A DNA stretch of 64,000 bases from Chlorokybus atmophyticus (taxonomy: Eukaryota > Plantae > Mesostigma and Chlorokybus algae). Made by a program: the position numbers and the translations under genes. Of the stretch, positions 34,012-51,551 are shown piece after piece (position 1 is the stretch's first letter; every line of letters starts with the position of its first letter). A model generated the notes under the pieces. The model was not told the DNA's origin and searched no databases. It was given only the letters and a program-made list of their open reading frames with translations. The DNA is taken from contig RHPI01002262.1 of assembly GCA_009103225.1 (NCBI GenBank), positions 62,001 through 126,000 of the forward strand, read 5' to 3'.

Positions 34012-34335
34012 NNNNNNNNNNNNNNNNNNNNNNNNNNNNNNNNNNNNNNNNNNNNNNNNNNNNNNNNNNNNNNNNNNNNNNNNNNNNNNNNNNNNNNNNN
34101 NNNNNNNNNNNNNNNNNNNNNNNNNNNNNNNNNNNNNNNNNNNNNNNNNNNNNNNNNNNNNNNNNNNNNNNNNNNNNNNNNNNNNNNNNNNNNNNNNNNN
34201 NNNNNNNNNNNNNNNNNNNNNNNNNNNNNNNNNNNNNNNNNNNNNNNNNNNNNNNNNNNNNNNNNNNNNNNNNNNNNNNNNNNNNNNNNNNNNNNNNNNN
34301 NNNNNNNNNNNNNNNNNNNNNNNNNNNNNNNNNNN
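34012..34335. other. Assembly gap
   Basis: 324 N. Confidence 0.99.
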
Positions 34336-46637: not shown

Positions 46638-48462
46638 ATGGAAGTTGCTGATTACTCTCCCCTCCTCTTCAATCAGCCGCTTGAAGATGAGCTTGTGACG
46701 GTAGCGGGCCGCGCGCTCAAACAGGTGTGTGTGAGCGCAGCAAGCAGTGTCTGTCATAGGTGTGAGTGTCACCCATTGTCACATTGCAATTCTATGTAGC
46801 TGGAAGCCCAACATGCTGGTCCAAAGTGCAAGTAGTGTCTGTCATGGGTGTGAGAGTCAAGCATTGTCACATGACAATTCTATGTAGCTGGAGTCCAAAA
46901 TGCATGCAAGCATGCCGTCATTTTTGCATGCAAGAATGCATGCAGTCGTGGTCATGCACAGTGAGGTCGACGCTCAGTTCTTATAGTGTGGTCGTCACTA
47001 TCACCGTCATTGTTGATGTTATAAAGGTCAGCTCATGACGACCTACTATAGACCATTGCATCCTTTGCATTAATGTGTTGCTTCATACAATCCTTGGTTT
47101 CCTCTTTTCAGCCATCAAGTGTTCAGGAACCAATTGTCCAGTGACTCCTTCATATAATGATGCATTCTTCCGTCCATCGCATGAATACCCTCCATTGCTA
47201 TAGCCAGCATTCACTTTTCTCAAAGCTCATTCGCGCAGAATGTGCCGATAACGTACAAGATCCCTAACGGGACGTTTGCGTTGGTGGCCGCCAACGTGCT
47301 TGTGCACGTGCGCCCGCAGTCTTTTAAGCGCCTCGTCCCAAGCAAGGAGCTTACATGCCTTAGCCCCAAACTTGTCCTCGAGGCAAGAGAGAGTTGTAAT
47401 GTGTATATGCGTGCGTGCATGTGTATGTTGTGTGTGCTTGACCATGACCACATAACCAATCATTGCAGGAGAGGGATCTAAGGAGGCTGCTTGTGAGTGG
47501 TTTCGTGCACAAGGACGCCGCTCACCTCCTCTACAACATGGTGTCCTTCTCCCTCAAGGGCTCTCAGCTGGAGAAGCAGGTGAGTCATTGTTGGCCGCAC
47601 TTGCATGGTCATGTTGTATGTGTATGAACCACTCTGGATGGATGTCAACTGAAGATGAAGAACCAACACGTTGGGTCTCCTCAATTCAATGTGCAGGTTG
47701 GACCCAAGCAACTTCTGGAGACTGTGGGAGACCTGCTGACTCTGTCCCACGGGTAAGAGTTGGTAACAGTGACACACCAAGTCCACCAATGAAAATTGCA
47801 TGCATCAAGTGTTATGGTAAAGTCCACTTGTGAAGTTTGCATGCGTCGTAGTGTGGTATGCTGAAATCCAACAACCCACTCTCAGGTTGGTTGTGGCGGT
47901 GTCATGGCTGCTTGCAAAGCGATTCAACATGTGGGGTCCATACAATAGCTCGTGCGTTGGGTTTTCGGGCGTGCTGTTCGCGCTTCAGGCCGTGCATGCG
48001 AATCGGGCCGGCGGGATGGCCGACGTGTTGGGTTACCAGATGCCCGCGTCCTCGGCATTGTTGGTGGAACTCATTGTCAATCAGCTTGTCCTCCCTCAAG
48101 GCTCCTTCCTCGGCCACATGTGCGGCGTGATGGCGGGCCTCGCTTATGTGCACGTGTCCCCGTTTATCCTGGCCGCGTGGAGATACATATTTGGGAAGAG
48201 GTTCAACCCGCCAAGTCTGTTACTCACAGTCAGCGCAGGGTTTCTATTGTCGCTCGGGATTGCTCCCTTTTGCAGAGCTGTTCAGAGAGTCAAAGGGGCT
48301 TTGTTTAGACCCAAAGCGAGGAAATTGGGGAGCGGACATGCGCGTCCCGCCATCAACGGGACAGATGTTGGTAACGGTGATGGAAGCAATGGTGTGGATA
48401 ATGGTGAAGTGGATGTTGAGGAGTTGCGTCGGAAGCGGCTGGCCAAGTTGGAAGACCCGTAG
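46638..48462 (+). CDS. Rhomboid-like protease RBL14/RHBDD1; exons 46638-46724 (tentative), 47239-47382, 47469-47579, 47697-47752, 47886-48462
   Basis: LRRLLVSGFVH..AAHLLYNM, catalytic VGFSG and SFLGHMCG, C-terminal ELRRKRLAKL. Confidence 0.88.
46746..46905. repeat. Imperfect 88-bp tandem duplication in a rhomboid gene intron
   Basis: AGTGTCTGTCAT.GGTGTGAG.GTCA..CATTGTCACAT..CAATTCTATGTAGCTGG starts at both 46746 and 46834. Confidence 0.85.
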
Positions 48463-49006
48463 TGATGTTGTTGTTTATGATCAATTGCGTGCATGCCTGA
48501 TTGGGCATTTATCCTCACATTGTTGGATACTTAGGTTTAGACTGTGTGGTAGACTATTATTCCATTGAGGGTGTCATTGTTGCAGTGCTTGTATAGTGAT
48601 GACTAAGACCCTGCTATATGCTTAGTACACGGGGACCTTCCGTGCCTTGTTGTACAGAATTGTGACCATGCAGTGATGGCAGTGCACTACACAGCTGGCA
48701 GCCTGCAATCGTGCACTTACAATCTGAAACACCACATCCAGCACCGGAGTCGTTTAGCGCGTGTGTTGCAGTGTGGTGGATGGCATGTGCAATGCGGAGT
48801 AGTGCACAATTATGCGACACCACACGCACCACCGTCGATACGAGTGGCATTGAGATATGACAGTAACATGGCCCACTGAAACCAGTTGGGCACGCGAACC
48901 AAAGCCAGCAAATCTAACAACTAGCCGCTGCTGGGGTACATTGAAGTAAAATGCTATGAACAAAGTATGAGGTATCTCATCTACAAGCTGAGGGTGGAAA
49001 CATTGT

Positions 49007-50076
49007 TTACCAATTAGAAAAGCCCCACCAGTAAGTTGCGAGTGCCAAGAGAAGCAAATACAACCTGCTCCTGTCATCTCTGTGACGCACGGAGCGCTGG
49101 TGATCTCCTTGTGGTGTTTGTGCATACTCTCCTTGACACCGCTGCATATGAGAAGCACTGCAACGACAACGCTGTATTCTCCACGTACGAGAAGCACTGC
49201 GAAGATAGCGCTGCCTTCGCCGTGCACTACCTTCACAGTGCTTCTCGTAAGCTGCGGCATTGAGGAGATCATCAAGCTCCGCCTTGTTGCTGAGCTTCAC
49301 TTTTACTAGCCAACCGTCCTCAAAACGACTGGACTTCACCTGCAATGGTCGCATCAGTAAACACGCTGCTTAATGCCACAATCTCACTTTGACATACTAG
49401 ACCGCCCAGCAGCTGTCATGAAGTTGGACTCATGCACCATTGTCGTTGCGTTGCTAACAAAGTGGTAGCTGCTGACAGACAAAACACCGCTCTCAAAAAC
49501 TCTTTGCCGAGCGCTTTTGCTGTAGATTTAAAGCGAGTTTCCATTGCCACAGACTTGCCAGTATAAGCGATACCAGCATGCATGCTAAGTCGTGCATGAC
49601 AAGGGCCTCTTGATGAATGCTGCTCCCTAACAATGCATCTCAAGTCCATGGTGAACAAACACATGAGCTGCAACGGATGTATATGTGCCTGAATCAAGTT
49701 GTGTTGCAGCATAATTTATGGTCATGAGGCTTACATTGGCGGGGGAGTCGGCGAGGATGGTGTTGACATCCGTGACAGTGCCTGTAACGGGAGAATAGAT
49801 GTTGCTCATGCTCTTGACGACACCAAGGGTCTCGCCTTTCTTGAGCTCCTTGCCAACGAAAGGGACATCCACGGAGAGGACGTCGCCGAGGGTCTTCTGG
49901 GCGAAGTCGCTGATGCCCACCACGCCCTCATTCCCAGACACTCTCACCCACTGGTGGCTGGTCAGGTACTTGCTTGAGGACGGGTTTACCGTCGCGTATG
50001 CCCTAGCCCACGAACGGACACCATCGATGCAAAGAAGCCTCCCAGAAAATGTGGTGCACGACCTTCGCAAAGCCAT
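49007..50076 (-). CDS. GCSH: Aberrant glycine cleavage system H protein (3-aa deletion before the lipoyl Lys, extended C-terminus); exons 50076-49735, 49339-49007
   Basis: KYLTSHQWVRV...GISDFAQKTLGDV...YSPVTGTV..VN..L..SPAN|VKSSRFEDGWLVKVKLS...LLNAAAYEKHCE. May be a pseudogene or a diverged paralog. Confidence 0.85.
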
Positions 50077-50431: not shown

Positions 50432-51551
50432 ATGGTGAGTTGCGGGACGAGTGGAGCAGTGTTGGCGGAGGGTTTCGGGCGCTAGGGTTTTGGCAACTAG
50501 GGCTTGCTGACTAGGGTGTGGTTGTGCTTCATGCCGGGTCTGAATGCGTGTACGAGATTCATAGGTGGATGTGTTTGTGACGTGCAGTTGATCCCTAAGA
50601 AGAACCGCACAGAGGTGTACAAGTATCTGTTCAAGGAGGGCGTGCTGTACGCCAAGAAGGACTTTGAGGCTCCCAAGCACCCTGAGCTCGATGTTCCCAA
50701 CCTGCAGGTGAGTATAGTCATTTTAGACTGTGTGCTGTGTGCACTATTGTACTCCTGTGCGACCACTACCTGCATCCTCTGATAGTTGCATTTTGTGTCG
50801 GTTGTCATGTGCATAGGTTATCAAGTTGATGCAGTCCTTCAAGTCCAAGGAGTACGTGAAAGAGGCTTTTGCATGGCGCCACTACTACTGGTAAGTTACT
50901 TGAGTCACGCGCAGAATAGGTCCGTGTACTGGGCAATTACTTGCAGTGCGTTGATTGCAGCAGTGCGCCATGCACTGTTGGGCGGACGATTTGACTGCAT
51001 GTGCATATGTGCGGCAGGTGGTTCTGTAGTTACAGTGCTACCTGATGCTGAGCATATTACACTTACACAGGCACTTATATGGACACATTCGCAAGCTAGC
51101 ACACTGTATCATTGCGCAGTCGTGCGCCTCATGTGCAAAACAGTCTGTTCAACCAGCGCATGCGTCACCAGGTTGCTTGACCGATGTCATTCTCAGGTAC
51201 CTCACCAACGACGGCATCGAGTACCTCCGCGAGTACCTCAACCTGCCTAGCGAGATCGTGCCCGCGACGCTGAAGAAGTCCAACCGCGCTCCCACCCGCC
51301 CGCTGTCCGATCGCCCGCCTCGTGGCCCTCCCGGCTTCGGCGGCGGCGACAGGCCTCCACGCTTCGGTGGAGACCGCGAGGGTTACCGCCGTGATGGTCC
51401 TCCTGGCCCTCCTCGCTACGGCGACAAGGCTGGGGCTCCAGGTGATTACCGCCCAGAGTTCCGTGAGGGTGGTGGTTTTGGCCGAGGTGGCGGCGGCGGC
51501 GGTGGTGGCTTTGGACGCGGCGGGTTCGGCCGCGGTGGGCCCCCGCAGTAG
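50432..51551 (+). CDS. RPS10: 40S ribosomal protein S10 (eS10); exons 50432-50434, 50588-50707, 50817-50890, 51197-51551
   Basis: M|[25 protein letters not shown]...VPNLQ|[25 protein letters not shown]|[27 protein letters not shown]; RGG tail. Confidence 0.98.
50483..50519. promoter_or_regulatory. Telo-box (TAGGGTTT) plus two degenerate TAGGG copies in RPS10 intron 1
   Basis: Seen directly; telo-boxes are established 5' elements of plant ribosomal protein genes. Confidence 0.55.

Follow-up and report, generated by a model that had tools for sequence, protein, structure and literature searches.

Chlorokybus atmophyticus carries an H-protein gene whose coding end is followed by inverted copies of itself, and this arrangement raises the question of whether the hairpin formed by these copies in the transcript is a regulatory device, a source of small RNAs, or the by-product of a rearrangement that remodeled the end of the gene. 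A preliminary description of the locus had leaned toward a small-RNA source or a structural regulator aimed at the H-protein family. We examined the gene, the repeats, the predicted fold, and the sequences of related H proteins within the whole 64-kb stretch of DNA analyzed (hereafter the window), to which all coordinates refer.

The locus encodes a divergent H protein

The gene lies on the minus strand and corresponds to the public C. atmophyticus model Chlat1/3185 (EukProt/JGI; Chrsp22S00251), the 155-amino acid product of which is called P0001 here. Exon 1 (49735–50076, minus strand) comprises 114 codons beginning with the ATG, and its translation is 100% identical to residues 1 through 114 of P0001. 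Intron 1 (49340–49734, minus strand) is 395 nt long with the boundaries AAT/GTAAGC and TTGCAG/GTG (slashes mark splice junctions), and the tblastn match of P0001 is broken at this position. Exon 2 (49231–49339, minus strand) reads VKSS...YEKHCE and also supplies the first base of the following codon, and for this exon the tblastn match and the translation are concordant.

Each exon served as a separate query, with the public protein P0001 standing in for the spliced product. With the Pfam family PF01597 (GCV_H; gathering cut-off of 22.2 bits), the match reaches 75.9 bits for exon 1 and 23.6 bits for exon 2, the latter covering profile positions 88 through 120 of 122. H proteins in the PDB likewise match exon 1 (E = 3e-17). 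The GCV_H domain spans essentially the whole protein, and a mitochondrial-type N-terminal extension is present. A gene on the plus strand was also considered but was rejected, since the 75-amino acid open reading frame located there has no Pfam match. The window contains no other H-protein exons.

P0001 is the divergent member of a three-gene Chlorokybus H-protein family and is 71% identical to P0002. The two other members, P0002 (Chrsp7S07747) and P0080 (Chrsp46S06097), are canonical, near-identical to each other (at least 90%), and located on other scaffolds. Of 25 residues conserved without exception in eight relatives, P0001 keeps 21 and differs at the remaining four. The lipoyl-lysine motif E-S-V-K-A is not found in its usual form: the eight relatives carry V-E-S-(V/A/I)-K, where P0001 has V-V-K-S-M-S-N and a three-residue gap. 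At the level of the whole loop (P0001 residues ~85–92), G-V-V-E-S-V-K-A-A-S-D of the relatives is replaced by G-V-V-K-S-M-S-N, which converts VESVKAAS to VKSMS and removes the conserved Glu. The Lys is in register in the HMMER alignment and out of register in the MAFFT alignment. Judging from this loop, the divergent paralog may escape lipoylation, and the gene may be a neofunctionalized or decaying copy, in which case a remodeled C-terminus would be easier to tolerate.

Two neighboring genes flank the locus. An RPS10 gene (50432–50707, plus strand; ATG/GTGAGT, then LIPKKNR...) diverges from the H-protein gene, and the interval of ~350 nt between them is probably a bidirectional promoter. On the opposite side, an open reading frame with a rhomboid domain (47830–48462, plus strand) converges on the H-protein gene, with the two stop codons located ~450 nt apart, such that the 3′ UTRs may overlap.

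Inverted copies of the coding end form a 26-bp stem

An inverted-repeat search recovered the hairpin at the place previously claimed, with arms at 49186–49211 and 49224–49249 that are 26 nt long, 88% complementary, and 12 nt apart. The earlier measurements (25 nt, 22 of 25 identical, 14-nt spacer) describe the identical feature minus one pair. The 5′ arm (49224–49249, minus strand) consists of 19 nt from the end of exon 2 and 7 nt from the start of annotated intron 2, and it includes the donor AAG/GTAGTG at 49231/49230. The 12-nt loop of this outer register (49212–49223, minus strand), together with 49207–49211, holds the self-complementary sequence AGCGCT (49207–49212), which is the symmetry center of an inner palindrome. 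Two pairing registers are thus present, namely the 26-bp stem with its 12-nt loop and the inner, spacer-less palindrome about AGCGCT.

The expectation of an uninterrupted stem in the mRNA sense was borne out by RNAfold, which returned 26 consecutive base pairs composed of 23 Watson–Crick and three G·U pairs. As had been noted, all three mismatches between the inner arms become G·U pairs in minus-strand (mRNA-sense) RNA. The 64-nt core folds with a free energy of −48.0 kcal/mol as sense RNA and −35.6 kcal/mol as antisense RNA, a difference of ~12 kcal/mol in favor of the sense stem. In a 201-nt context the fold has a z-score of −6.85, and none of 200 dinucleotide shuffles folds equally well. 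With a 324-N gap set aside, this is the sole hairpin in the 64-kb window that has at least 20 matched base pairs and a loop no longer than 60 nt, and hairpins of this kind appeared zero times in 20 shuffled controls. The run of 324 N (34012–34335) is an assembly gap, which mimics a giant palindrome in naive scans. A palindromic assembly artefact at the H-protein gene was considered separately and is ruled out by the divergence of the arms, which amounts to 12 to 21%.

The second inverted copy, which has decayed further, is likewise present, with arms at 49128–49160 and 49236–49268 (33 nt, 79% complementary), and its translation reads LLDTAAYEKHC against LLNAAAYEKHC in the gene, as first described. 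The seven mismatches of this outer arm pair comprise two G·U pairs, three A·C pairs, and two transversions, and the outermost pair contributes one additional A·C. We refer to the inner copy (49186–49221, plus strand), which reads YEKHCEDSAAFA and whose first 26 nt constitute the 3′ arm of the hairpin, as copy B. The outer copy, copy A (49090–49182, plus strand), reads ..GDLL, an 18-nt insert, and then LLDTAAYEKHCNDNAVFS, and it stands in a 39-nt tandem register with copy B. This register also appears as a direct repeat between 49147–49182 and 49186–49221 (39-nt spacing, 78%). The core TAYGAGAAGCACTGY occurs in exactly three copies within the window.

Read in the sense of the gene, the patch starts with the terminal part of exon 2 (...AELDDLLNAAAYEKHCEGS), after which come 16 nt that may echo HCEGS (49224–49209) and then AGCGCT. 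These are followed by the reverse complement of copy B (YEKHCEDSA and a short tail) and then by that of copy A, which contains ..GDLL, the 18-nt insert, LLDTAAYEKHCNDNA, and a tail similar to that of copy B. The HCEGS echo matches at 12 of 16 positions and is weak, given that 1.4% of adjacent 16-mers in the window are equally good. A TRF search found no tandem array at the patch and called neither the proposed 39-nt unit nor the 16-nt unit.

The public gene model implies a terminal intron

The C-terminus of P0001 is ...YEKHCE-AAASC, and the genome accounts for the AAASC tail solely by joining 49231 (AAG/GTAGTG) to 48930. The implied intron 2 (48931–49230, minus strand) is 300 nt long, begins with GTAGTG, ends with CCCCAG, and consists for about half of its length of the duplicated patchwork. 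It is followed by a terminal coding exon segment (48914–48930, minus strand) of 17 nt, in which 2 nt complete an Ala codon and the remainder encodes Ala-Ala-Ser-Cys-stop. A donor GAAG/GTAGTG buried in the stem had been offered in the preliminary description as an alternative to read-through, and it proves to be the donor that the public model implies. The acceptor of this intron (48928–48935, minus strand) is a CAGCAG tandem of the NAGNAG type, and use of the second AG would remove one Ala.

The earlier observation that the usual stop is missing and that the frame runs ~70 residues further also holds. There is no in-frame stop after ...HCE, and retention of intron 2 would add 74 codons (49007–49230, minus strand) before the stop at 49009–49007. 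This read-through tail looks non-coding by composition, as it is Arg-rich and has a GC3 of 0.45 compared with 0.74 in exon 1. The tail finishes with a hydrophobic stretch (LYLLLLALATYWWGF; 49010–49060, minus strand) located right before the stop, which is probably due to chance but would resemble a tail anchor if intron 2 were retained and translated.

The intron 2 donor occupies positions 17 through 25 of the 26-position stem. By constrained partition-function folding in a 521-nt context, opening of the 9-nt donor costs 10.2 kcal/mol, compared with 4.6 kcal/mol for the donor of intron 1. Its +5 position is T, whereas G is found at +5 in all three nearby well-supported donors (GTAAGC from intron 1 of the same gene and two GTGAGT sequences from the divergent RPS10 gene). 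By comparison with this consensus, the donor is weak. Because the donor is both weak and paired within the stem, which is predicted to hinder access by U1, we infer that a mixture of spliced and intron-retaining transcripts is likely.

The Chlat1 annotation was built from ab initio predictions, homology, and transcript evidence, and it includes ~9,066 transcript-supported coding sequences (PMC7027972). Our search with the full public model recovered no transcript-derived or read-through variants, and all cluster members were from EukProt. This result is uninformative, because the canonical paralogs are also without any transcript-derived entries. A metagenome scan with a 22-nt pattern from the end of exon 2 gave zero matches.

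Relatives and inverted copies preserve the ancestral C-terminus

The Klebsormidium protein P0006 ends with ...YEKHC-E-D-S-T-H, the protein P0007 from a streptophyte relative ends with ...E-E-N-A-H, and the canonical Chlorokybus paralogs P0002 (Chrsp7) and P0080 (Chrsp46) end with ...YEKHC-A-D-S-A-H. When the divergent gene is read through the donor, the sequence is YEKHCEGSA; copy B encodes YEKHCEDSA, and copy A encodes NDNA after HC. The read-through sequence and the copies align to HC(E/A)DS(A/T)H of the relatives, indicating that the codons after Cys were once contiguous coding sequence. At the protein level, the relatives are continuous across the position of the implied intron 2. As judged from this alignment, the Gly codon GGT is derived from an Asp codon (GAT or GAC), and the A>G change involved provides the GT of the donor. 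The palindrome center AGCGCT corresponds to the Ser-Ala codon pair, and it would have been a natural snap-back point for a nascent strand, with the His and stop codons lost there.

Three-way comparison over 26 nt gave eight differences between copy A and the gene, five between copies A and B, and three between copy B and the gene. With these distances, copy B takes the place of the common ancestor on a branch of zero length, and thus the C>T, A>G, and C>T differences in the stem would all have arisen in the gene arm. These gene-arm differences are synonymous except for the one that creates the donor.

A proposed foldback scar followed by intron gain

With moderate confidence, we interpret the locus as an old scar of local foldback and tandem duplication that was followed by gain of a terminal intron, wherein the hairpin is a by-product with no selected function of its own. 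According to this proposal, the ancestral gene of the divergent H-protein paralog would have ended ...YEKHCEDSA-His-stop. A foldback duplication at AGCGCT, occurring by snap-back or template switching, would have copied the last ~60 coding bases in inverted orientation, and the inverted copy would have taken the place of the His and stop codons. The patch would then have been elaborated by short tandem duplications of a 39-nt unit and possibly of a 16-nt unit. Without a stop, the frame would have continued into 74 junk codons. A change of GAT to GGT in the old Asp codon would have created the donor AAG/GTAGTG, and splicing from this donor to a terminal coding exon of 17 nt that lies 300 nt further downstream would restore a tail of normal length (EAAASC). 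Creation of the donor within the old coding end would also explain why it resides in the 5′ arm of the 26-bp stem.

Some observations fit this proposal less well. The splice is taken from the public model, and a weak donor within a −48 kcal/mol stem is an improbable site for efficient splicing. The proposed tandem units were not called by TRF, and the 16-nt unit is weak when taken by itself. Furthermore, pairing is preserved at all three mismatches of the stem, and copy B is unchanged, which together give a weak hint of maintenance that would be expected by chance with a frequency of ~1/8 to 1/4. Finally, the concentration of differences at third codon positions between copy A and the gene is somewhat above that expected for a purely local neutral copy, as discussed below.

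That concentration bears on the origin of copy A, which the preliminary description had tentatively attributed to another GCSH paralog because most of the changes relative to the gene are synonymous. The excess itself is real, with differences at 10 of 15 third positions and five of 30 other positions (Fisher p = 0.002). Such a pattern, as well as the Asp of LLD that is common to copy A and the paralogs, could be accounted for if copy A came from a different H-protein gene, either as ectopic filler DNA inserted during repair of a break or as what remains of a once-functional tail-to-tail duplicate. However, the pattern is largely what is expected when only one of two lineages is constrained by coding, since by our estimate this alone places ~46% of the differences at third positions and leaves an excess that is marginal (~p = 0.09, a conditional estimate). 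The LLD Asp is the ancestral state and is found in Klebsormidium and P0007 as well. Both canonical paralogs carry Ala after Cys (HC-A-DSAH), which is present in neither copy (HC-E-DSA in copy B and HC-N-DNA in copy A), and hence a paralog source receives no positive support. Again, the window has no other H-protein exon, and copies A and B have a common non-coding tail in the 39-nt register, which indicates that they were duplicated in place. We consider an outside source for copy A to be rather unlikely, and local origin is the more economical reading of these sequences. Another explanation, which we regard as unlikely, is that the gene is decaying, either as a pseudogene or with a tailed, non-canonical product after loss of the stop, and that the last intron is an annotation patch made by a gene predictor. 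Indeed, P0001 alone has lost three residues of an otherwise invariant lipoyl-lysine motif and departs from the family at four of 25 invariant positions, its donor is weak and buried, and the searched collections are without a transcript-derived protein for it. In opposition to this view, the frame stays open for 150 codons, the protein retains 21 of the 25 family-invariant residues and 71% identity to its paralog, and every gene-arm difference is synonymous save the donor-creating one. The missing transcript-derived entries are shared with the canonical paralogs, as noted above, and we infer that a terminal coding exon of only 17 nt would more typically come from a transcript-guided model than from an ab initio one.

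The remaining explanations assign a function to the stem. If it were a selected cis-regulator that gates the buried 5′ splice site, it would set the ratio of a normal-length, H-protein-like product to an intron-retaining isoform with a 74-residue tail. The donor is indeed located mid-stem, where its opening costs more than twice as much as that of the intron 1 donor (10.2 versus 4.6 kcal/mol), all inner-arm differences become G·U pairs in the sense strand, in which the stem is 12 kcal/mol stronger, and copy B has accumulated no changes compared with five in 26 nt for its sister copy A. The unchanged state of copy B is a weak hint of maintenance, but it could equally reflect younger age or arm-to-arm conversion. 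We agree with the earlier estimate that three wobbles out of three would occur by chance with a probability of about 1/8, and the value is higher when a C>T bias is considered; chance is therefore at least ~1/8, and the three wobbles include the change that creates the donor. Moreover, the wobble argument, which draws on the inner arms (three of three), loses weight with the outer arms, where two G·U pairs stand against three A·C pairs and the outermost pair adds another A·C. With the outer arms included, there is no overall wobble bias. The read-through tail also appears to be non-coding. We judge a splicing regulator to be quite unlikely. Even less probable, and in our view very unlikely, is a role of the hairpin as a proto-miRNA or hairpin-siRNA source, from which a diced 3′-arm RNA antisense to the YEKHCE codons would target its own mRNA or those of the canonical paralogs. 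The inverted duplication of target-gene sequence has the geometry of the Allen et al. 2004 model, and the foldback from an inverted copy of gene sequence matches that of plant-type MIRNA loci. The sense transcript provides a near-perfect 26-bp duplex, and this short, fully paired stem with the gene's own exon as one arm is compatible, as a predicted structure, with a hairpin siRNA. Chlorokybus encodes an algal-type Dicer and two Argonautes, and knowledge of small RNAs in these algae has been called "almost non-existent" (PMC7994812). However, the hairpin, with 26 bp of stem and a 12-nt loop, is short and lacks the lower stem on which plant-type processing relies. A search of Rfam found no curated family match, with the best candidate (mir-431) reaching only 25.9 bits relative to a gathering score of 70, and the hits were sub-threshold look-alikes of animal miRNAs. 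It is also distinctly improbable that the stem has been maintained in an early-diverging streptophyte without DCL1 in either of two capacities, namely as a switch for the new terminal 5′ splice site of a lipoylation-defective paralog, or as a young hairpin small-RNA gene within its source gene that could act on both canonical members of the family. On the present basis, the locus is a gene-structure curiosity and does not constitute evidence of regulation or of a small-RNA role.

Comparison with known systems

Several known systems offer comparisons for this locus. If the splice is real, the locus is an unusually legible case of terminal intron birth, wherein the stop was removed by a palindromic repair or duplication event, a single transition in the old Asp codon made the GT donor, and the inverted copies serve as fossils of the ancestral coding end. 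It would also serve as a natural test of how a green-lineage spliceosome handles a donor locked in a 26-bp stem, and it draws attention to an H-protein paralog of Chlorokybus in which the lipoylation loop is altered. Relative to canonical H proteins (PF01597; Klebsormidium GDC-H P0006; P0002 and P0080), P0001 is alike in its whole-length GCV_H domain, its mitochondrial-type extension, and the 21 of 25 conserved residues. It is unlike them in that its loop is three residues shorter and has lost the Glu, and in that its modeled C-terminus is EAAASC, reached via a putative new intron, and not EDSAH.

The hairpin has the geometry both of a splice-site-sequestering hairpin and of MIRNA birth, and any functional role is at most a prediction. 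Liu, Goodall, Kole, and Filipowicz reportedly found in 1995 (EMBO J 14:377) that, in plant cells, hairpins sequestering a 5′ splice site inhibit intron processing. Those hairpins would resemble the Chlorokybus structure in that the donor is base-paired within a stem that is long and stable and is closed by a short loop. They differ in that they were engineered and their effects were measured, whereas the Chlorokybus stem would be a duplication scar and is known from its sequence and predicted fold. In the model of Allen et al. (2004), plant MIRNA genes arise when target-gene sequence is duplicated in inverted orientation. The similarity is that an inverted copy of a coding segment yields a foldback that is complementary to a gene family over an extended length. 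In contrast to those loci, the foldback here lies within the pre-mRNA of its own source gene, with the gene's own exon as one arm, and the stem is just 26 bp. Chlorokybus has only an algal-type Dicer (PMC7994812).

The closest parallel is with intron gain, for which local duplication, repair of double-strand breaks, and intronization have been reviewed as routes, with paralogs reported as a class in which gains are more frequent (PMC3443670). In agreement with those routes, the formerly contiguous coding sequence ...HCE-DSA is now split between an exon and an intron in the public model, the GT stems from one point change (GAT>GGT), the gene is a paralog, and locally duplicated filler makes up about half of the intron. 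The locus differs from the classical tandem duplication of AGGT in that the Chlorokybus duplication is inverted (palindromic), and the word "inverted" is absent from the text of the review (PMC3443670). It differs also in its proposed trigger, which would be loss of a stop codon and not a premature stop, and in that the splice is implied by a gene model. Conditional on a real splice, the locus would therefore represent a new example of duplication-associated intron gain with an unusual, inverted geometry.
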